Made by a program: the position numbers and the translations under genes. Source: Pseudomonas aeruginosa PAO1 (GTDB taxonomy: Bacteria; Pseudomonadota; Gammaproteobacteria; Pseudomonadales; Pseudomonadaceae). Taken from it: 64,000 bases of DNA. The notes beneath the pieces are model-generated. The model saw nothing but the letters and a program-made list of their open reading frames with translations, ran no database searches and was not told where the DNA came from. The stretch is taken from assembly GCF_000006765.1 (NCBI RefSeq), contig NC_002516.2, one strand, 5' to 3'. This document shows, piece by piece, positions 4,176 to 34,095 of this stretch (position 1 is the first letter of the stretch; every line of letters starts with the position of its first letter).

Positions 4176-6626
4176 TCAGACGTTTTCCAGTTGCTTGAGC
4201 GAAATCCGTTCGAACTCCTTCTTCAATTGCGGCTGTTCGATGCGCTGCTTCCATGGGTCCTGCTCGAAGGACAGGGCGAATTGCAGGCGGTCGTTGAGCG
4301 CCTTGCGGTTTTCCGCGTCCTCGACCACCGCCTTGCGGATGTGCTCCATGCCGACCCGCTGCAGATAATGCACCGTGCGCTCCAGGTAGAAGGCTTCCTC
4401 GCGGTAGAGCTGGAGGAAGGCGCCGTTGTATTCGCGCACCTCTTCGGCGGTCTTGAGCTTGACGAAGAACTCCGCGACCTCGGTCTTGATCCCGCCGTTG
4501 CCGCCGATGTACATCTCCCAGCCGGAGTCCACGCCGATGATGCCGACGTCCTTGATCCCGGCCTCGGCGCAATTGCGCGGGCAGCCGGAGACCGCCAGCT
4601 TGACCTTGTGCGGCGACCACATGTTGAACAGGTCGTGTTCCAGATCGATGCCCAGCTGCGTCGAGTTCTGCGTGCCGAAGCGGCAGAATTCGCTGCCGAC
4701 ACAGGTCTTCACGGTGCGGATGGATTTGCCGTAGGCATGTCCGGAGGGCATGTCGAGGTCTTTCCAGATGGCCGGCAGGTCGTCCTTCTTCACCCCCAGC
4801 AGGTCGATGCGCTGGCCGCCGGTGACCTTGACCATCGGCACCTGGTACTTGTCGGCGACGTCGGCGATGCGCCGCAACTCGGCGGCGTTGGTCACGCCGC
4901 CCCACATCCGCGGTACCACCGAGTAGGTGCCGTCCTTCTGGATGTTGGCGTGGGCGCGTTCGTTGATCAGGCGCGACTGCGGATCGTCCTTGGCTTCTCC
5001 CGGCCAGGTCGAGATCAGGTAGTAGTTCAGGGCCGGGCGGCAGGTGGCACAGCCGTTCGGGGTCTTCCAGTCCATGAAGCGCATGGCGGCGTCGAGACTG
5101 GTCAGCCGGTGTTCGCGAATGGCCTTGCGGATCTGCCCGTGGTTGAGGTCGCTGCAGCCGCAGATGGCCTTCTCGCTCTTCGGCTTGACGTCGGCGGCGC
5201 CGCCGACGGTGCTGATCAGGATCTGTTCCACCAATCCCGCGCAGGAGCCGCAGGAGCTGGCGGCCTTGGTGTGTTTCTTGACTTCGTCGACGCTGAACAG
5301 GCCGTGTTCTTGTATGGCCTTGACGATGGTGCCCTTGCAGACGCCGTTGCAGCCACATACTTCGGCCGTGTCGGGCATGCTCGCGGCGCTGTTCTGGCCC
5401 TGGTGGCCGACATCGCCGAGGGCGTTCTCGCCGAACATCAGGTGGTCGCGGATCTGCGCGACGTTGTGGTTCTCGCGGATCTGCCGGAAGTACCAGCCGC
5501 CGTCGGCGGTGTCGCCGTAGAGACAGGCGCCGACCAGTACATCGTCCTTGATCACCAGCTTCTTGTAGACGCCGCCGATGGGGTCGGAAAGGGTGATGGT
5601 CTCGCTGCCTTCGCCGCCGATGAAGTCGCCGGCGGAGAACAGGTCGATACCGGTCACCTTGAGCTTGGTCGAGGTCACCGAGCCCTGGTAGCGGGCGTAG
5701 CCGAGATGAGCCAGGTGGTTGGCGCAGACCTTGGCCTGCTCGAACAGCGGCGCAACCAGGCCGTAGGCGATGCCACGGTGGTTGGCGCATTCGCCGACCG
5801 CATAGATGCGTGGGTCGTAGGTCTGCAGGGTGTCGTTGACCAGGATGCCGCGGTTGCAGGGGATGCCCGCGCTTTCGGCCAGCTCGGTATTGGGGCGGAT
5901 GCCGGCGGCCATTACCACCAGGTCGGCGGGAATCACGTCGCCGTCGTTGAACTGCACGGCACAGACCCGGCCGCTGCCGTTGTCCATCAGTTCCTGGGTC
6001 TGGGTGTTCAGGCGGAAGCGGATGCCGCGGGCTTCCAGCGCGCCTTGCAGGAGTTTGCCGGCGGTGCGGTCCAGTTGGCGTTCCAGCAGCCAGTCGGAGA
6101 GGTGCACGACGGTCACGTCCATGCCGCGTTGCTTGAGGCCGTTGGCCGCCTCCAGGCCGAGCAGGCCGCCGCCGATCACCACCGCGTGGCTGTGGGTCCG
6201 GGCGCAGTCGATCATGGCCTGGGTGTCGGCGATGTCGCGGTAGCCGATCACGCCCTGCAGGCGATTGCCGGGTATCGGCAGGATGAAGGGGAGCGAGCCG
6301 GTGGCCAGCAGCAGGCGGTCGTACTCGGCCTCGCTGCCGTCCGCGGCGACCACCCTGCGGCGAAGCCGGTCGATCTGCACCACCTTGCGGTCGAGGAGGA
6401 GCTTGATGCCGTTTTCCGCATACCAGTTGAGGTCGTTGAGGACGATTTCCTCGAAGGTCTGCTCGCCGGCCAGCACCGGGGACAGCAGGATGCGGTTGTA
6501 GTTGGGATGGGGCTCGGCGCCGAACACCGTGATGTCGTAGAAGTCCGAGTTGAGCTTGAGCAGTTCTTCCAGGGTACGGACCCCGGCCATGCCGTTGCCG
6601 ACCATCACCAGCTTGATCTTCTTCAT
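4176..6626 (-). CDS. nirB: Assimilatory NAD(P)H nitrite reductase large subunit
   Basis: VMVGNGMAG FAD site, GGGLLGLE, BFD CGCNGV...CGSC, siroheme motifs KTCVGSEFC and SGCPRNC; ATG at 6626 preceded by AGGAG (816 aa). Confidence 0.95.
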   Translation of the reverse strand: MKKIKLVMVGNGMAGVRTLEELLKLNSDFYDITVFGAEPHPNYNRILLSPVLAGEQTFEEIVLNDLNWYAENGIKLLLDRKVVQIDRLRRRVVAADGSEAEYDRLLLATGSLPFILPIPGNRLQGVIGYRDIADTQAMIDCARTHSHAVVIGGGLLGLEAANGLKQRGMDVTVVHLSDWLLERQLDRTAGKLLQGALEARGIRFRLNTQTQELMDNGSGRVCAVQFNDGDVIPADLVVMAAGIRPNTELAESAGIPCNRGILVNDTLQTYDPRIYAVGECANHRGIAYGLVAPLFEQAKVCANHLAHLGYARYQGSVTSTKLKVTGIDLFSAGDFIGGEGSETITLSDPIGGVYKKLVIKDDVLVGACLYGDTADGGWYFRQIRENHNVAQIRDHLMFGENALGDVGHQGQNSAASMPDTAEVCGCNGVCKGTIVKAIQEHGLFSVDEVKKHTKAASSCGSCAGLVEQILISTVGGAADVKPKSEKAICGCSDLNHGQIRKAIREHRLTSLDAAMRFMDWKTPNGCATCRPALNYYLISTWPGEAKDDPQSRLINERAHANIQKDGTYSVVPRMWGGVTNAAELRRIADVADKYQVPMVKVTGGQRIDLLGVKKDDLPAIWKDLDMPSGHAYGKSIRTVKTCVGSEFCRFGTQNSTQLGIDLEHDLFNMWSPHKVKLAVSGCPRNCAEAGIKDVGIIGVDSGWEMYIGGNGGIKTEVAEFFVKLKTAEEVREYNGAFLQLYREEAFYLERTVHYLQRVGMEHIRKAVVEDAENRKALNDRLQFALSFEQDPWKQRIEQPQLKKEFERISLKQLENV

Positions 6627-6655
6627 GCGGAGTAGCTCCTGCATAAGGTTGGCGC

Positions 6656-6765
6656 AAACAAAAAAGGCGTCCCGCTGTTGCCAGCAGGACGCCTTTGTCC
6701 AGGTCCCGTTCGGTCGGGAAACGCCGCCTCGTCGTTGAGGCAGGCGCTTTGTTGTCGATTGTCGG
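6656..6765 (-). ncRNA. nalA: nirB leader RNA with ANTAR dual hairpin and intrinsic terminator (NalA-type attenuator)
   Basis: Minus strand: GCCTC-AACGAC-GAGGC, then GGAC-AAAGGC-GTCC overlapping the 5' arm of terminator AAAGGCGTCC-TGCTG-GCAA-CAGCG-GGACGCCTTTTTTGTTT. The 5' end is approximate. Confidence 0.85.
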
Positions 6766-6774
6766 GAGAACCCA

Positions 6775-6790
6775 AGCAGGCGCCGTGCCA
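6775..6790 (-). promoter_or_regulatory. Sigma-54 promoter of the nirBD-nasC-cobA operon
   Basis: TGGCAC-GGCGC-CTGCT matches the -24/-12 consensus TGGCAC-N5-TTGCW. Confidence 0.85.
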
Positions 6791-6855
6791 ACTTGCGCTG
6801 TTGCCTATCTCCATGGCCTTGCAGGGATAACGCGGGGCCTCCCCGCGGTCTTTCT

Positions 6856-6890
6856 GCCCCGTGCCGGGGCGTATCGCACCGAGCTGGTGC
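6856..6890. promoter_or_regulatory. Candidate NtrC enhancer pair for the nirB promoter
   Basis: GCACC-N5-GGTGC at 6876-6890 and degenerate GCCCC-N5-GGGGC at 6856-6870, about 65-100 bp upstream of the -24 element. Confidence 0.55.
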
Positions 6891-6893
6891 CTC

Positions 6894-8561
6894 TCAGCCC
6901 TTCAGCCAGACCAGGAGTAGCGCCAGGTTGGCGGCCAGGGACAGCAGGGCGATGGCGCGCCAGGTCTGCAGCGGTTCGCGCTCCAGCAATGGGCGGGTTG
7001 CCGCGGCCGGCAACGCTTCTCCCTGTTGCAGCGAGAGCAGCCATTCCTCGGCGGTCTCGAAGCGCTGTGCGGGGTCGCAGGCGACGGCGCGCAGCAGCAG
7101 GTCGTCGATCCAGGCCGGCAGGTCGGGGCGATAGCGGCTGGGCGGGACGGGGCGACCGAAGCGCGGGTGCTGGAAGGCTTCGATCTCGCCATAGGGATAG
7201 CGCCCGGTCAGCGCCTGGTAGAGGCAGACGCCGGTGGCGTAGAGATCCTGGCGCACCGAGGGCGAGGTGCCGGAGAAGCACTCCGGCGCCAGGTAGCTGG
7301 GCGTACCCGGTAGCAGATGGGGGTCTTCGCGCGACAATCCCGGACACCAGGCCAGGCCGAAATCCAGCAGGCGCAGCTCGCCGTCGCGGCCGAGGTGGAG
7401 ATTTTCCGGCTTGAGGTCGCGGTGCAGCAGGTTGCGTCGATGCAACTGGCCAAGCCCGCGCAGCAGCTGGTTGGCCAGCCCCAGCCACTCCGGCAGCGAC
7501 AGCGGGCCATGGTTGCGCAAGCGCTCGGCGAGAGTCTCTCCGGGGTGCTCGCGCATCAGGTAATACAGATGCTGGCGTTGCGCCAATCCGTGCAGCTCGG
7601 GGAAATGCCGGCCCTGGACGCGGCGCAGGAACCATTCCTCGAGCAGCAGGGCCTGGGTTGCCAGCGGATCGTCGGCACGTGCGGCGGGAAGGGTCTTCAG
7701 CAGCCAGGGTTGGCCCTGGCCATCCTCGACCCGGTAGAGCAGGGACTGGCGGGATTCGCCGAGCAACTGCCGGACCCGCCAGCCTTCGAAGAGCTGGTCG
7801 GGCTTCAGCGGTGGCGGCAGTGGCCAGTGGCCCAGTTGCGCGAGGGCGTCGCCGAGGCTGCCTGCGGGCACGGCTTCCACGCGCACCAGCAGGGCGCTGG
7901 CGTTGTCCTGGCTGCCTGCCAGGTGGGCGGCGCGAACCAGGGCCTCGGCGCTGCGCTGCGGCTCTTCGGCGTTGCGCAGGATGCTGCGGATGCCGCTGTC
8001 GCCCAGCGTCGCCCAGACGCCGTCGCTGACCAGTAGCCACTGGCTGCCGGGCTCCAGATCGCCTTCCAGATAGTCGACCACCAGATGCTGGTCCAGTCCC
8101 AGGGCGCGGGTCAGCACGTGTTGCATGTGCGGCTGTTCCCAGACGTGGTCGCTGGTCTGCCGGAGCAACTCGCCGTCGCGCCACAGGTAGGCCCGGCAAT
8201 CGCCGACGTGGGCCAGGGTGTAGCGGGTGCCGCGCAGCACCAGGGCGGTGAGGGTGGTGAGCAGCGGCTGGCCGCCACCATTGGCCTGTAGCCAGCGGTT
8301 CTGCGCCAGCAGCAGGCGGTCCAGGGACTGCACGATGGCCCAGGTTTCCGGAGTCGCATAGTAATCCAGGGCCAGCGCTTGCAGGCTGCTGCGCGCCGCC
8401 AGGCCGCCATCGGCGCACTGGCTGACACCGTCGGCGATGGCCAGCAGGTGTCCCTTGCTGGCGGCCAGGGCCGGCGCCGGGGTGACCACCCGCAGCGCGT
8501 CCTGGTTTTCCGTGCGAGGCCCGCAGGCGCTGGCTTCGCCAATGCTCAGTCGCAACCCCAC
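6894..8561 (-). CDS. Bifunctional PP2C-type phosphatase / Hanks-type Ser/Thr kinase with C-terminal membrane anchor
   Basis: PP2C motifs ENQD, IADG, HVGDCRAY, LTRALG, VSDGVW, QDNAS; kinase motifs LLK, HRDLKPEN, DFG, GTPSYLAPE, DLYATG; hydrophobic C-terminal tail. GTG start at 8561, 2 nt after the nasA stop. Confidence 0.88.
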   Translation of the reverse strand: MGLRLSIGEASACGPRTENQDALRVVTPAPALAASKGHLLAIADGVSQCADGGLAARSSLQALALDYYATPETWAIVQSLDRLLLAQNRWLQANGGGQPLLTTLTALVLRGTRYTLAHVGDCRAYLWRDGELLRQTSDHVWEQPHMQHVLTRALGLDQHLVVDYLEGDLEPGSQWLLVSDGVWATLGDSGIRSILRNAEEPQRSAEALVRAAHLAGSQDNASALLVRVEAVPAGSLGDALAQLGHWPLPPPLKPDQLFEGWRVRQLLGESRQSLLYRVEDGQGQPWLLKTLPAARADDPLATQALLLEEWFLRRVQGRHFPELHGLAQRQHLYYLMREHPGETLAERLRNHGPLSLPEWLGLANQLLRGLGQLHRRNLLHRDLKPENLHLGRDGELRLLDFGLAWCPGLSREDPHLLPGTPSYLAPECFSGTSPSVRQDLYATGVCLYQALTGRYPYGEIEAFQHPRFGRPVPPSRYRPDLPAWIDDLLLRAVACDPAQRFETAEEWLLSLQQGEALPAAATRPLLEREPLQTWRAIALLSLAANLALLLVWLKG

Positions 8562-25319: not shown

Positions 25320-25396
25320 GCGCCCGTAGCTCAGCTGGATAGAGCATCCGCCTTCTAAGCGGATGGTCGCAGGTTCGAGTCCTGCCGGGTGCGCCA
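25320..25396 (+). tRNA. tRNA-Arg(UCU)
   Basis: Cloverleaf; anticodon arm TCCGC-CTTCTAA-GCGGA; GTTCGAGTCC; CCA end. Confidence 0.96.
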
Positions 25397-25447
25397 TTCG
25401 GCGAATCGGCAAGAAGCAGGCGATGTTTTACCGCAAGTCGTAATATG

Positions 25448-25523
25448 GTGGGCGTAGCTCAGTTGGTAGAGCACAGGATTGTGGCTCCTGGTGTCGTGGG
25501 TTCGATTCCCATCGTCCACCCCA
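25448..25523 (+). tRNA. tRNA-His(GUG), copy 1 (encoded G-1 at 25447)
   Basis: CAGGA-TTGTGGC-TCCTG anticodon arm; C discriminator; CCA end. Confidence 0.96.
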
Positions 25524-25577
25524 TATTCCGAAGCGCCAGGCCCGGGGCCTGGCGTTTTCATTTCCAAGCAGTGTCCC

Positions 25578-25662
25578 GCGGACGTGGTGGAATTGGTAGA
25601 CACACTGGATTTAGGTTCCAGCGCCGCAAGGCGTGAGAGTTCGAGTCTCTCCGTCCGCACCA
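25578..25662 (+). tRNA. tRNA-Leu(UAG)
   Basis: CTGGA-TTTAGGT-TCCAG anticodon arm; long variable arm with GCAA loop; CCA end. Confidence 0.96.
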
Positions 25663-25728
25663 CCTTCAGGCTCGGCTTGTCCGGCCGCTGCGGTTGAAGC
25701 CGGAACGTCCGGCACGATTCACGATATG

Positions 25729-25804
25729 GTGGGCGTAGCTCAGTTGGTAGAGCACAGGATTGTGGCTCCTGGTGTCGTGGGTTCGATTCCCATCGTCCAC
25801 CCCA
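25729..25804 (+). tRNA. tRNA-His(GUG), copy 2
   Basis: Sequence identical to copy 1. Confidence 0.96.
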
Positions 25805-25914
25805 TATTTCGAAGCGCCAGGCCTTGTGCCTGGCGTTTTCGTTTGCGCTTCACGATCTCTTCTCCGCTTGCCTTTCCGGTACCCAATCCGCCCTCATGGG
25901 CGCGACGGCAGGTT

Positions 25915-25941
25915 GAACTTGTTCCGGGTCCGGCGCTCTTA
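25915..25941 (+). promoter_or_regulatory. Candidate AlgU (sigma-22/sigma-E) promoter
   Basis: GAACTT-N16-TCTTA against the consensus GAACTT-N16/17-TCTnA. Confidence 0.65.
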
Positions 25942-25993
25942 AGCGAGCCTGTCGTTCCTGGCGGGTCCGTATATGCAGTCTGGGTGAAGCGAC

Positions 25994-26215
25994 ATGTCGA
26001 TGAAATGGACCGAGCAGCGCTTGCGCAAGGCTCTCAAGCAGATGGCGAACAATCATGAATCGGCTGCGGTCGAGGTCATGCGCGCCGTCGAGCGGGCGAA
26101 CGATCCGAAGCTGGCGCAGCGCCTGCTCGAGGTGATCGAGCAGATGCACCAGGATGCCGATGCGCTGCGCTCCATCGACGACGAAATCGCCAGCGGCGTG
26201 ATCCGTTGCCAATGA
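25994..26215 (+). CDS. Small hypothetical alpha-helical protein (73 aa; alternative start 26000)
   Basis: Strong GC3 bias, amphipathic helical composition, no overlap with other genes, upstream AlgU-like promoter. Confidence 0.75.
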   Translation: MSMKWTEQRLRKALKQMANNHESAAVEVMRAVERANDPKLAQRLLEVIEQMHQDADALRSIDDEIASGVIRCQ

Positions 26216-26388
26216 GGCCGTAGACGCTCCGCAGTTCAGGACTTCCCGGCTGAAACCGGCGCATCCGGCCGGTTCGCCAGTTTCGGGCGCAAGGTCGCGC
26301 CCTGGGCTGTGTTCCGGCGAACGGTATAAGGTTGGCGGCCGCGGAAGGCGAAGGCGGTGAACATGTTCGTATTCTCTCTCGGTGTGTT

Positions 26389-26505
26389 TCAGAAACGGTA
26401 TTCCACCAGGGCGCTCGGGCCGATGCTGTCATGCCACTCTTCGGCGACAGCGGCGGAGCAGAGGCTGGCGAGCGTGCCGGCGAGGCACAGGGAGGGGCTT
26501 CTCAT
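26389..26505 (-). pseudogene. 38-codon internally deleted outer-membrane beta-barrel gene remnant (mipA-like)
   Basis: MRSPSLCLAGTLASLCSAAVAEEWHDSIGPSALVEYRF*; AAGGAG 5 nt before an ATG that overlaps the upstream stop (ATGA); signal peptide plus C-terminal Y-x-F. Confidence 0.72.
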
Positions 26506-28334
26506 GGGGACTCCTTCCGTTGCAGCCAGGGACGTGCCTTGGTGTCTTGCTGGGCGAAGCGGTAGCCGAGCGCGTTCAGACCGTCGAAGTCGCGACTGAA
26601 GGTGTCTCCCAGGCCCTGGCCGCTGCCGGCCAGGACGGCGTGTGCGCTGTCGATGGGTTGCAGGATGAACTCGCCGGAGCGGGTTCCTCCGGCTTGCCCG
26701 CGCACCAGCAGGAAGCCGTCTTCGATCCTGATGCTCAGGCCGTTCAGGTAGCTGTGCCGGCCCGTGCTGGCGACGCGGTAGGTGCCGACGGCTTCGGTCC
26801 AGGCCTGGGGCAGGGATGTCGGCTCGATGCGCTCGCCGAGGTAGGCGGTCTGGTCGTGGCGGCGGGACACCAGGATTCGGCGTTGGCCGTAGCTGACCAC
26901 GTCCAGTTGCAACTGTCCGGCGCTGTCCACGCCGACAGGCCAGAACCCCAGCAGTCTTTTTCTCATCTGCAGCCAGCCCGAGGTGTCGCGCAACAGTTCC
27001 ACGCGTTGTTCGCCGAAATCCGCGTACAGGCGACCCCTGCGCTCGTACAGGCGAATCTGGCCTTGGCGGGTTGCGTAGCGACCGTATAGCTGTCGCCGGT
27101 CCTCCGGGCTCGGCACCTCCAGTGCGGGGGCGCGCGCGGGGGTGGGCTGTACGGCGGGGCGACGAGCGCCCTGTTTGACCTGCAGCATGAGCGACGCCGC
27201 TTGCCGGGCCAGGGAGGCAGTGAGCGACCCGCTGTCATCGGCGTTGCTCATGACAATGGCGGCGAGGCGCTGTTCCGGCAGCAGAATCAGATGGGCGCTG
27301 AATCCTGGGGTGGCGCTGGCGTACTCATAGTGACGGATGCCTCCTTCCAGCGGCGCGGAGCCGCACGGGCTGAGGAACCAGGCCAGGCCCACCTGGCAGT
27401 CGAAGTCCAGGGCATTGCCGGCGTTCTGCTGGCGGAACATCTCCTCGACGGAGTGTTTCCTGAGAAGCTGGCGCTCCTTGTGGCGCCCGTTGGCGAACAG
27501 CATGCGGACGAAGCGGCTGAGGTCGACCGGGCTGCTCCACAGATCGTTGACCGGGAGGTCGCTGGCGGAGCCGGGGCGACCGCCGCCGCTGTAGCCGTGG
27601 GCGCGTTGCGCCTGGGGCAGGGCGTTCCTGGCGAAGCTGGAGCGAGTCATCTGCAAAGGGTCCAGCAGGTGCTCGCGCATGTGCTGCTCGAAGTGCTTTC
27701 CGGTGTTGCGCTCGATGGCCGCGCCGACCAGTTCGTAGCCAAGGTTGGAATGGGCGACCTGGGTTCCCGGCGGATTGCTCAGCCAGACACCGGATACTTT
27801 CGCCGGCAGTTGGCCGAGTGAGTTCGGGCGTTCGCCGAACAGGGGCGGCAGGTGTTCGCCAGGAAGGCCGGACTGATGGCTGAGCAGCCGGCGGAAAGTG
27901 ATCGCGCGATCCGCCTCGCTCTGGTCGGCATGGAAGCGTGAGCGTACGTAGAACTCGCGCAAGGTGTCCTGGAGCGGAGCGTCGAGAGAGAGTTGGCCGC
28001 GTTCGGCCAGTTGCAGGGTCGCGCTGGCGATCAGTAGCTTGGACAGGTCGCCGGCGTGGAATGCGGTGTGCTCGCTGGCGTTGATCCTGTGCTGTCGGTC
28101 GGCATAGCCGAAACCGCGGGCCCAGACCAGTTGCTGGTCGTCGACCAATGCCAGGGCCAGGCCGGGCACGTCCTGCCTTTCCATTTCCCGGCGGATGTGG
28201 CGTTGCAGATAGTCGATGACCTCGCCGTAGTTGCCCACGGCGGCGCTCGGCGCTGGCGGGGCGGGCGGCAGTCCGTGGCAGCCGCTGGTGCCGAGCAGGC
28301 AGCCGAGAAGGGAAAGATGCATTGCACGAAACAT
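26502..28334 (-). CDS. Exported serine beta-lactamase-fold protein with degenerate active site (PA1797/MipB-like)
   Basis: VPGLALALV, FRRLLSHQSGLP, PPGTQVAHSNLGY and LWSSPVDLSRF of the class C/esterase fold; N-terminal signal with possible lipobox TSGC. Confidence 0.85.
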   Translation of the reverse strand: MFRAMHLSLLGCLLGTSGCHGLPPAPPAPSAAVGNYGEVIDYLQRHIRREMERQDVPGLALALVDDQQLVWARGFGYADRQHRINASEHTAFHAGDLSKLLIASATLQLAERGQLSLDAPLQDTLREFYVRSRFHADQSEADRAITFRRLLSHQSGLPGEHLPPLFGERPNSLGQLPAKVSGVWLSNPPGTQVAHSNLGYELVGAAIERNTGKHFEQHMREHLLDPLQMTRSSFARNALPQAQRAHGYSGGGRPGSASDLPVNDLWSSPVDLSRFVRMLFANGRHKERQLLRKHSVEEMFRQQNAGNALDFDCQVGLAWFLSPCGSAPLEGGIRHYEYASATPGFSAHLILLPEQRLAAIVMSNADDSGSLTASLARQAASLMLQVKQGARRPAVQPTPARAPALEVPSPEDRRQLYGRYATRQGQIRLYERRGRLYADFGEQRVELLRDTSGWLQMRKRLLGFWPVGVDSAGQLQLDVVSYGQRRILVSRRHDQTAYLGERIEPTSLPQAWTEAVGTYRVASTGRHSYLNGLSIRIEDGFLLVRGQAGGTRSGEFILQPIDSAHAVLAGSGQGLGDTFSRDFDGLNALGYRFAQQDTKARPWLQRKESP

Positions 28335-28390
28335 GGAACACCTGGCGGAAAGGCGAGGTGTCCCATGCTAGGGCGGGCCTGGCTGGCAGT

Positions 28391-28428
28391 CCTTACGGCT
28401 TTGTCAGCAATCTGTGAAAGATTGTTAA
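28391..28428 (-). promoter_or_regulatory. Candidate OmpR-family (ParR) tandem binding repeats
   Basis: TTAACA / TTCACA / CTGACA / GTAAGG at 10-11 bp spacing on the minus strand, upstream of the beta-lactamase-fold gene. Confidence 0.45.
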
Positions 28429-28438
28429 GCCTCCGCTG

Positions 28439-29725
28439 TCAACGGGGTCGCTCCCAGGTCAGGCGGAAGGAGGCGCCTCCCTGCGGCGTTTCCAGCGCTT
28501 CCGCATAGCCGCCGTGCCATTGCGCGACCCGGTGGACGATCGCCAGGCCCAGGCCGAAGCCGCCGGTGCTGCGATCGCGGCTGTCGTCCAGGCGCGAAAA
28601 GGGTTCGAAGATCTTCTGCCGGGCGTCCGCCGGTATCCCGGGGCCGTCGTCGTTGACCCGTATCTGACAGCTGTCGCCTTGATCGAGGAGGGCGATTTCG
28701 ACGCGCGAGTGTGCGTGGCGAATGGCGTTGCGCAGCAGGTTGATCACTGCGCGCGCCATGAAGCGAGGCTCGATGCGGATCTGTTCGACCTGGCAGGCGC
28801 TGATCTCGCAGGTGACTCCGGCGGCTTCGGCTTCCAGGGCGACGTCGGCGACGACGCTATCCAGCCAGCTCGCGGCGTCGACGATTTCCCGGTGGCTCCC
28901 GACGTTGCCGTGCTCCAGGCGGGCGTAGGTCAGCAGTTCGGAGACCATTTCCTCCAGTTCGCCGAGATCGGCGCGCATGTCCTCTATCAGGTCGTGGCGT
29001 ACTTCGGCGTCGACCTGCTTGTTCAATTGCTCGAGTTCGAAGGACAGGCGGGAGATCGGCGTGCGCAATTCGTGGGATACCGCGTTGGTCAGTTCACGCT
29101 GGTTGCTGATCAGGCTTTCGATGCGGTCGGCCATCTGGTTGAAGTGCTGGGCCAGGGTGCGGATGTCGGAGCGTCGGAAAATGCGCGTGCGCGATGACAG
29201 GTCGCCGTCGCCGAAGCGTTGCGCGGCCAGGCGCAGGGTCTCGAGGTCGCGCCAGTGCGGGCGGACCCATACCAGCAGGGCGATGCCGACCAGCACGCCG
29301 AGCAGGATGTAGGCCAGCACGGTGAATAGTGGGGTCAGCGAGGGTTCCGGCGGCAGCTTGATGTCGAGCAGTTGCGGGCCCGCGTCGATGCGGCTGATGA
29401 ATTCCGTGAAGTCCTCGCGTACCACCAGCAGGTTCTTGTCGAGGAGGGCCTGCTCTTCCTGCGTCAGCTTCGCCTGCCTGGCATCCGTCAGGCTCAGCTC
29501 GAGCCCGTAGTGGGGACGCCAGTCTTCGAGCTGTCGCTGGCGTCCGGCCTGGTCCAGCGGGGCCAGCTTTTCCACCAGCGAATAGGCCTGGCCGCGAACG
29601 GCGTCGCGGTGATAGTTCTCGACGATGCTGTCGTAGAACGCGTCGATGACATGGTCGACCACGAAGATCGCGGCGGCGAACCCCAGGGCCAGCAGCAGGT
29701 AGAGGCGCAGGAACAGGCGCAGCAT
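28439..29725 (-). CDS. parS: Sensor histidine kinase ParS
   Basis: Two TM helices, [24 protein letters not shown] and GGFGLGL. Confidence 0.9.
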
Positions 29726-30433
29726 TCAGAGCTCCCAGCCCAGCGGGTTGAACAGGTAGCCCTTGCCCCAGACAGTCTTGATCCGGACCGGCTCGCGCGG
29801 ATTGTCCTTCAGTTTATTGCGCAGCTTGCTGATGCAGACGTCGACGCTGCGGTTCAGGCCGTCGAAACCGATGCCGCGGATCTGGTTGAGGATCTCGTCG
29901 CGGGAAAGTATTTCCCCTGCCTGGCTGGCCAGCAGCCAGAGCAGCTCGAACTCCATCGTGGTCAGTTCGATGCCGAGGCCTTCGAGTTCCGCTTCGCGCC
30001 GCCGTCGGTCGATGTTCAGCTTGCCGAATGTCAGGCTTTCCGGGGACGCGGGAAGGGGCGCGTGCCGGCGCATCAGGGCGCGCAGGCGGGCGAGCAGCAC
30101 CGGTGGCTCGATCGGCTTGATCACGTAGTCGTCGGCGCCGGACTCCAGGCCGAGGATGTGATCGAGATCGTCCTCCTGGGCGGTGAGTATGAGGATCGGC
30201 AGGTTCGCGACCCGGCGGATCTCCCGGCACACCTGCAGACCATTCTGTCCGGGGAGCATGAGGTCGAGAACCACCACTTGCGGCTTGAAGTCGAGGAAGG
30301 CGGCGAACGCGGCATCACCGCGATGCACCTGGCGCACTTCGAAACCATGCTGGGAAAGGAAACTGGCGATCAGGCGGGCGAGCTTCTGGTCGTCTTCGAC
30401 GAGCAATACCTTGCTGAGGGTAGGGCAGTCCAT
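29726..30433 (-). CDS. parR: OmpR-family response regulator ParR
   Basis: VEDD, LDLMLPG, YVIKP, winged helix IKTVWGKGY; abuts parS. Confidence 0.9.
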
Positions 30434-30574
30434 AGGGTTTCATCGGTCGGAGCGGAATCGGCTGGCATTATATGCGCCCGCTTCCGGCGAAGCTCCAGCG
30501 ACTCGTTCGAGATCGGGCTGCGATCGGCGGAAGCGGCCGGAAACACCCCGGGGATCCGCCTGCACCCTGGCGGG

Positions 30575-30603
30575 GTGACTTCTGCTTTTCCCTCTACTAG
30601 AAT
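30575..30603 (+). promoter_or_regulatory. Candidate sigma-70 promoter of tig
   Basis: GTGACT-N17-TAGAAT. Confidence 0.5.

Positions 30604-32814: not shown

Positions 32815-34095
<1,281 letters not shown>

Follow-up and report, generated by a model that had tools for sequence, protein, structure and literature searches.

A 38-codon reading frame downstream of mipB in Pseudomonas aeruginosa PAO1 as an in-frame deletion scar of the outer-membrane barrel gene mipA

Results and discussion

In the 64,000-nt stretch of the Pseudomonas aeruginosa PAO1 chromosome analyzed here (NC_002516.2; the window), an open reading frame (ORF) of 38 codons plus a TGA stop follows mipB (PA1797) on the minus strand (26389–26505; product MRSPSLCLAGTLASLCSAAVAEEWHDSIGPSALVEYRF). 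ParRS controls an operon of mipB and mipA, and we consider it likely that this ORF is a young, co-transcribed, possibly translated and unselected scar of its second gene, mipA. A single in-frame deletion of 663 bp between two short imperfect direct repeats, which took place in the ancestry of most P. aeruginosa strains, eliminated nearly all of 11 of the 12 strands of the MipA barrel; the signal peptide and the beginning of strand 1 are now fused to the six terminal residues of strand 12. The features discussed below are compiled in Table 1.

The remnant as such is already known, being the same object as the 117-nt "residual mipA", or MipA* (38 aa), reported directly after mipB (PA1797) in PAO1 and PA14 (Janet-Maitre et al., mBio 2024, PMC10936184); the initial annotation of this DNA had called the ORF hidden, which was not borne out. 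The published study read MipA* as a partial loss of the 780-bp mipA of IHMA87 and PA7, and described it with the words ">60% identity over 38 aa" and "genetic remodeling". It further reported that ParR binds the mipB promoter, that polymyxin induces the mipB-mipA transcript in IHMA87, and that MipA can be modeled as a 12-strand barrel with a signal peptide M1-A21, for which SignalP predicts cleavage after A21 (PMC10936184). To this description we add the two-ended in-frame fusion, the 663-bp gap, the direct-repeat junction, a much closer intact allele (of L054 type), the disappearance of the ancestral stop codon of mipB and the substitution pattern. The locus belongs to the circuit through which ParRS responds to polymyxin in a major pathogen, and in the published model MipA is a polymyxin-binding co-sensor of which most clinical lineages have the scar only. 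How these scar-only lineages signal through MipB and ParS is a question raised by the MipA authors themselves, who called PAO1 signaling without a complete MipA hard to understand (PMC10936184).

Intact mipA alleles and the deletion junction

With the MipB of the window as query, we retrieved a 71%-identical MipB labeled P. aeruginosa (P0004) on the contigs L039 and L040, where the genes parR-parS-mipB are followed by a gene for a 259-aa PF06629 (MipA) protein that is identical to PA7 ABR84016.1. The window and L039 are colinear apart from one gap, which lies within mipA: in blastn, window positions 33000–26410 corresponded to L039 1347–7920 and window positions 26415–21228 to L039 8578–13803. 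Using intact MipA in tblastn, we found residues 1–32 at 26505–26410 (72% identity, E 1e-9) and residues 252–259 at 26415–26392 (8/8) in the same frame, and the remnant ORF was the sole match in the window. The missing part thus amounts to 780 − 117 = 663 nt, that is, 221 codons, and is in frame.

A second intact P. aeruginosa allele, P0146, was obtained with PA7 MipA as query; it is 83% identical to PA7 MipA, is located in loci L054–L057 and has relatives on roughly 150 contigs, every one of which is named P. aeruginosa. Aligned to L054, the window shows the same 663-bp gap, flanked by stretches of 96.6% and 97.9% identity (window position 26410 corresponds to L054 6096, and 26415 to 6754), and outside parRS-mipB the identity is about 96–100%, mostly about 99%, compared with 93–97% for the PA7-type flanks. 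Over the first 29 residues, the L054-type N-terminus and the remnant differ at three positions only (N3S, A4P and Y26D). A nearly identical intact mipA allele is still circulating in P. aeruginosa proper, and the scar is a clean two-ended fusion of recent origin. MipA protein has also been detected in isolates belonging to groups 3 and 5 (PMC10936184), which implies that intact mipA occurs outside the PA7 group. The L054-type MipA cluster also holds shorter entries (P0270–P0273 and P0275, 155–235 aa) that are N-terminally shortened or have altered ends, and these may represent either partial genes at contig edges or additional, independent truncations of P. aeruginosa mipA.

The initial annotation had proposed an in-frame internal deletion that left both ends of a barrel gene, and the single 663-bp gap together with the match of both termini in one frame confirms this proposal. 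The parent gene had been named as a member of the MipA/OmpV family, and this was correct, as the intact allele matches PF06629 and resides after mipB under ParRS in PA7-group strains (PMC10936184). The split match predicted for blastn, with one part at the 5′ end and one at the 3′ end of a single full-length gene, was obtained with L039 and L054 and also in tblastn. As to the junction, both deletion ends bear a short imperfect direct repeat in the intact alleles, and mapping placed the join within this repeat at AGCGCC (26415–26410), the overlap of the two alignments in the window. A rare variant of the remnant, P0276 in locus L058, retains the residues L30 and G31 of the 5′ parent; this puts the join directly behind codon 32 and shows that P30 and S31 of the window are later changes.

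The AlphaFold2 (AF2) model of the intact allele (predicted local distance difference test 88.5, predicted template modeling score 0.81) places the signal helix at residues 2–18, strand 1 at 25–36 and the last strand at 247–258. Every Foldseek match to this model was an outer-membrane barrel, and a PDB sequence search with MipA gave no match. Given these strand boundaries, what survives in the remnant is the signal peptide (its stretch corresponds to the helix 2–18), some 8 residues of strand 1 and the C-terminal hexapeptide LVEYRF, a tail in which the Tyr is invariant and the Phe present in 29/30 sequences of the family alignment. The remnant shares with the MipA of PA7/IHMA87 (PF06629; the polymyxin-binding partner of MipB) its position, the signal peptide, the final LVEYRF and the parRS-mipB context, whereas only residues 1–32 and 254–259 of the intact protein are kept. 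With about 14 of 238 mature residues left, there is no 12-strand barrel and no channel, and the remnant cannot bind polymyxin or MipB as proposed for the barrel. By its orthologous position and the homology of both termini, the remnant descends from mipA, as a pseudogene-like element rather than a functional member of the family.

The 38-aa product had no Pfam match at E ≤ 10 and no NCBIfam match; the intact MipA alleles matched PF06629 with E-values of 5e-37 and 1e-35. The bare ORF is not beyond chance in this GC-rich DNA, where 74 ORFs of at least 30 aa overlap the region 23–30 kb. Its significance derives from the homology to MipA, which is beyond chance, and not from the presence of a reading frame.

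Coupling of the remnant to mipB

The layout in the window is parR-parS-PA1797 (mipB), with the remnant after mipB. The sequence details listed in the initial annotation hold throughout: besides the ORF itself, the start region consists of AAGGAG (26516–26511), the spacer tcccc (26510–26506) and the ATG (26505–26503), so that ribosome-binding site and frame are retained; the TGA of mipB (26504–26502) overlaps this ATG as ATGA; and the peptide has A-V-A, an A-x-A site, directly before E22 and Y-R-F, of the Y-x-F kind, at its C-terminus. The codon at which mipB ends in both intact-mipA alleles is a Trp codon in the window (26528–26526). This Trp codon replaces the ancestral mipB stop, and therefore MipB is 8 residues longer, reads through the Shine-Dalgarno (SD) sequence of the remnant and ends at the ATGA. 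Compared with the intact alleles, both the SD sequence AAGGAG (instead of AAGGAA) and the ATGA overlap are derived, and both are found in the remnant lineages represented by the window, L041 and L058. Since the remnant lies on the mipB transcript and has a good SD sequence and a stop/start coupling, it is probably transcribed upon ParRS induction and may be translated.

Table 1 Features at the mipB-remnant locus, in window coordinates.
Feature	Position	Strand	Evidence or remark
parR-type response regulator, 235 aa	29726..30433	-	ORF and Pfam
parS-type histidine kinase, 428 aa	28439..29725	-	Gene order the same in L039 and L054
mipB (PA1797-type), lipoprotein-like beta-lactamase-fold protein, 610 aa	26502..28334	-	Pfam Beta-lactamase PF00144, E 7e-66; PMC10936184
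Eight extra mipB codons, WLQRKESP, plus stop	26502..26528	-	Comparison with intact-mipA alleles
Shine-Dalgarno-like AAGGAG	26511..26516	-	5 nt before ATG; intact-mipA alleles read AAGGAA
Residual mipA ORF (MipA*)	26389..26505	-	38 codons plus TGA; exact peptide in public collection; described in PMC10936184
MipA signal peptide MRSPSLCLAGTLASLCSAAVA, codons 1–21	26443..26505	-	A-V-A before predicted cleavage site; aligned to intact MipA residues 1–21
Codons 22–32, mature N-terminus and first part of barrel strand 1	26410..26442	-	Alignment; strand 1 is residues 25–36 of intact MipA
Junction overlap AGCGCC	26410..26415	-	5′ and 3′ alignments to intact mipA meet here
Codons 33–38 (LVEYRF) plus stop, end of last barrel strand	26389..26409	-	Residues 254–259 of intact MipA; last strand 247–258
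tRNA cluster Arg-TCT, His-GTG, Leu-TAG, His-GTG	25320..25804	+	Bounds the variable region downstream

Ancestral state and distribution

A genome scan with MipB yielded loci of the P. fluorescens group only, without P. aeruginosa or PA7, and these loci served as outgroups. According to tblastn over all loci, 32 of the 38 carry an intact mipA after mipB, for which reason the mipB-mipA operon is ancestral and the state of the window is the result of a deletion. This count also overturned the view that mipBA is not a general arrangement, which had been suggested by L001, where mipB is not followed by mipA. No end-to-end remnant was detected in L001, L003, L006, L009, L037 and L038, the loci with mipB and without mipA; the genus seems to have lost mipA repeatedly. 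Directly after mipB, L001 has a two-component system in convergent orientation.

Within P. aeruginosa the remnant is widespread, the exact 38-aa peptide being present in 14,206 index blocks of the public collection (exact look-up). In another published set of isolates, every isolate had a truncated mipA or none, and the substitutions of the remnant and its truncation were tabulated relative to the MipA of PA7 (PMC12607733).

Substitution pattern and selection

We compared the substitutions in the remnant with those in its neighbors. Against L054, the remnant shows 5 nonsynonymous and 3 synonymous changes, a ratio of about 0.5, and the corresponding ratios of nonsynonymous to synonymous rates (dN/dS) are 0.19 for mipB and 0.04 for parR and parS; for intact mipA, L054 versus L039, dN/dS is 0.21. 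The changes include positions that are conserved in the family: position 26, which is Tyr in 24/30 and in 34/34 relatives and Asp in none, is Asp in the remnant, and the position of the family-invariant Gly31 is Ser in the window. A21S occurs in L041, one of two loci picked independently of the peptide, the C7R allele is found on 779 contigs, and the rare variants include Leu-to-Pro changes in the core of the signal peptide. Between the remnants of the window and of L058 there are 5 nonsynonymous and 0 synonymous changes, a count that is biased since L058 surfaced owing to its divergence. These data fit relaxed constraint on the remnant, and the peptide is most likely not under selection. The loci that bear the remnant are 98.3–100% identical to the window over 25900–28450; because of this identity over 2.5 kb, few mutations are expected within 117 nt, and an intact frame is expected even without selection. 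The peptide would thus persist on account of its small size and of a deletion that is recent compared with the mutation rate, and its amino-acid sequence would have drifted ever since that deletion.

Several observations weigh against an unselected scar. The derived SD sequence and ATGA overlap would favor translation of the remnant by termination-reinitiation. Copies of the remnant occur on thousands of contigs, and the frame is intact at 38 codons in every copy seen, as it is in all 33 catalogued protein variants (38 aa each), in a sample that is biased towards intact frames, as broken copies would escape the gene callers. In the main alleles of the remnant, LVEYRF and the A-x-A site are unchanged. 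Synonymous variation is absent among 11 diverse haplotypes that share the peptide, an observation of little weight, as this sample was chosen by peptide identity and cannot measure selection. Finally, the substitution counts are too small to decide against weak selection.

Alternative explanations

A role in cis, in which the translation of a short frame matters and the sequence of the peptide is irrelevant, would preserve the frame in the same manner; mipB expression could, for instance, be protected if the 3′ end of its mRNA stays occupied by ribosomes as far as the terminator of the former operon. The ATGA overlap and the strengthened SD sequence, derived and common to the window, L041 and L058, suit such a role, as does the accumulation of amino-acid changes while the length stays at 38 codons in all called copies, which is expected if only translation is needed. 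A young neutral scar predicts the same pattern, however, and the copies seen are biased towards intact ORFs. Moreover, we found no terminator-like site downstream on the strand of the remnant, and the fold downstream is not unusual (z = −1.7). The terminator scan returned one consensus site, which lies on the plus strand inside mipB (28164–28178), compared with an average of 2.2 sites in shuffled sequences; downstream of the remnant there was no convincing intrinsic terminator and no Rfam family besides tRNAs. We regard a role in cis as unlikely.

The initial annotation had also raised a residual function of the peptide. In this explanation, the ORF is induced by ParRS, translated, exported by the Sec pathway and cut after A21, and the resulting 17-mer EEWHDSIGPSALVEYRF exposes the C-terminus typical of outer-membrane proteins (OMPs), which activates the PDZ protease AlgW and thereby the sigma-22 stress response, competes at the β-barrel assembly machinery (BAM), or modulates MipB/ParS. 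The derived SD sequence with ATGA coupling, the intact A-x-A site and the unchanged LVEYRF tail all accord with it, and there are precedents. AlgW is activated by the C-terminal peptides of mislocalized OMPs and by MucE, which ends in WVF (PMC8545111), and DimA, a protein of 92 aa ending in WTF, activates AlgW likewise, with Trp and Phe being required and the middle residue dispensable (bioRxiv 10.1101/2025.04.28.651061). Given MucE and DimA, AlgW activation by small exported proteins that end in aromatic-x-Phe is a real mechanism in P. aeruginosa, and the remnant resembles both in its small size, the N-terminal export-type segment and a C-terminal aromatic-x-Phe of the kind that is read by the PDZ domains of DegS/AlgW. 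If the remnant acted in this way, polymyxin sensing would be tied to envelope stress in strains without the MipA barrel.

Several points argue against a functional peptide. The remnant ends in YRF and fits the general Y-x-F class of OMPs, in contrast to the W-x-F of both known AlgW activators, and Tyr-ended peptides activate AlgW less well than Trp-ended ones. MucE and DimA are encoded by conserved genes and their activity has been demonstrated, whereas the remnant is a deletion product known from its sequence; our literature search for ribosome-profiling or small-protein evidence returned nothing specific to the ORF, and neither expression nor phenotype data were found in the literature. The changes in the peptide are mainly nonsynonymous, including those at the conserved Tyr and beside the junction, and the other Pseudomonas without mipA (six loci) keep no minigene. 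As regards export, the sequence offers an n-region with R2, a weak h-region rich in G, T and S, and A-V-A; at 38 residues, the precursor would be very short for Sec targeting, and with such a core its export is uncertain. The MipA authors suggest insertion independent of BAM (PMC10936184). Two isolates reportedly lack mipA, and neither truncation nor absence of mipA was associated with minimum inhibitory concentrations of peptides or polymyxins (PMC12607733). We therefore consider a functional peptide quite unlikely. Its more specific form, in which the scar has been co-opted as a signaling microprotein whose exported 17-mer, inducible by polymyxin, triggers AlgW/sigma-22 or modulates BAM or MipB-ParS and partly replaces the MipA co-sensor, appears very unlikely. 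We found no sequence evidence that the scar replaces MipA, which keeps the focus on MipB or other partners instead of the peptide.

A chance ORF, or an ancestral short form that became the PA7-type gene by insertion, has next to no probability: short ORFs are abundant in this GC-rich DNA, but the two ends correspond, in one frame and in the right order, to those of intact MipA, the flanking DNA is colinear with L054 at 97% identity, the outgroups mostly carry intact mipA after mipB, and full-length MipA is a complete member of a 12-strand barrel family, so that the outgroup and junction data refute it.

Variation in mipB and the neighborhood of the remnant

MipB is unusually polymorphic among the strains bearing the remnant: 98 of 1829 columns vary across 13 sequences, compared with 10 of 489 in the downstream DNA, and its length varies among 610, 612, 614 and 616 aa (loci L044–L053). 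We searched mipB for tandem repeats as an explanation of these lengths and found none. In L041, which is 99% identical to the window at the DNA level, mipB (6001–7746) is nevertheless called as 581 aa with 74% identity. In a comparison of window positions 25660–30600 with L039, an island of divergence became apparent, in which identity is only 62–82% for mipB and the DNA between it and the tRNA cluster and about 84–94% for parRS, with flanks at 93–100%. The MipB of the window and that of the PA7 type share 71% identity at a dN/dS of 0.32 and a dS of about 0.6 (folD, 0.21). The island speaks for an old divergence of alleles or for recombination, and less for simple acceleration. Accelerated evolution of MipB after the loss of MipA was considered and rejected, as the relative-rate counts were roughly symmetric and reached significance only with the three nearest outgroups (chi-square 4–7). 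L042 and L043 were discarded as further clades: parS and/or mipB are fragmented in both assemblies, which hold no clade information, and parS of L042 (1517–2801) is broken into three ORFs.

Convergent with the remnant is an ORF of 73 aa (25994–26215, plus strand), which is called in every related locus (71–73 aa); it matched no Pfam family, and its NCBIfam match to the transcription factor TprA of integrative and conjugative elements was sub-threshold only (E 0.0018, far below the cut-off). Further downstream follows the tRNA cluster, in agreement with the tRNA genes reported just downstream of mipA (PMC10936184); in this Arg-His-Leu-His cluster, a tRNA-His unit of about 120 bp is duplicated. 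Homology between L043 and the window ends in the tRNA-Leu gene (window about 25604; L043 from about 5077) and is followed by a phage-lysozyme gene, which suggests that an island or prophage has integrated at tRNA-Leu in some strains.

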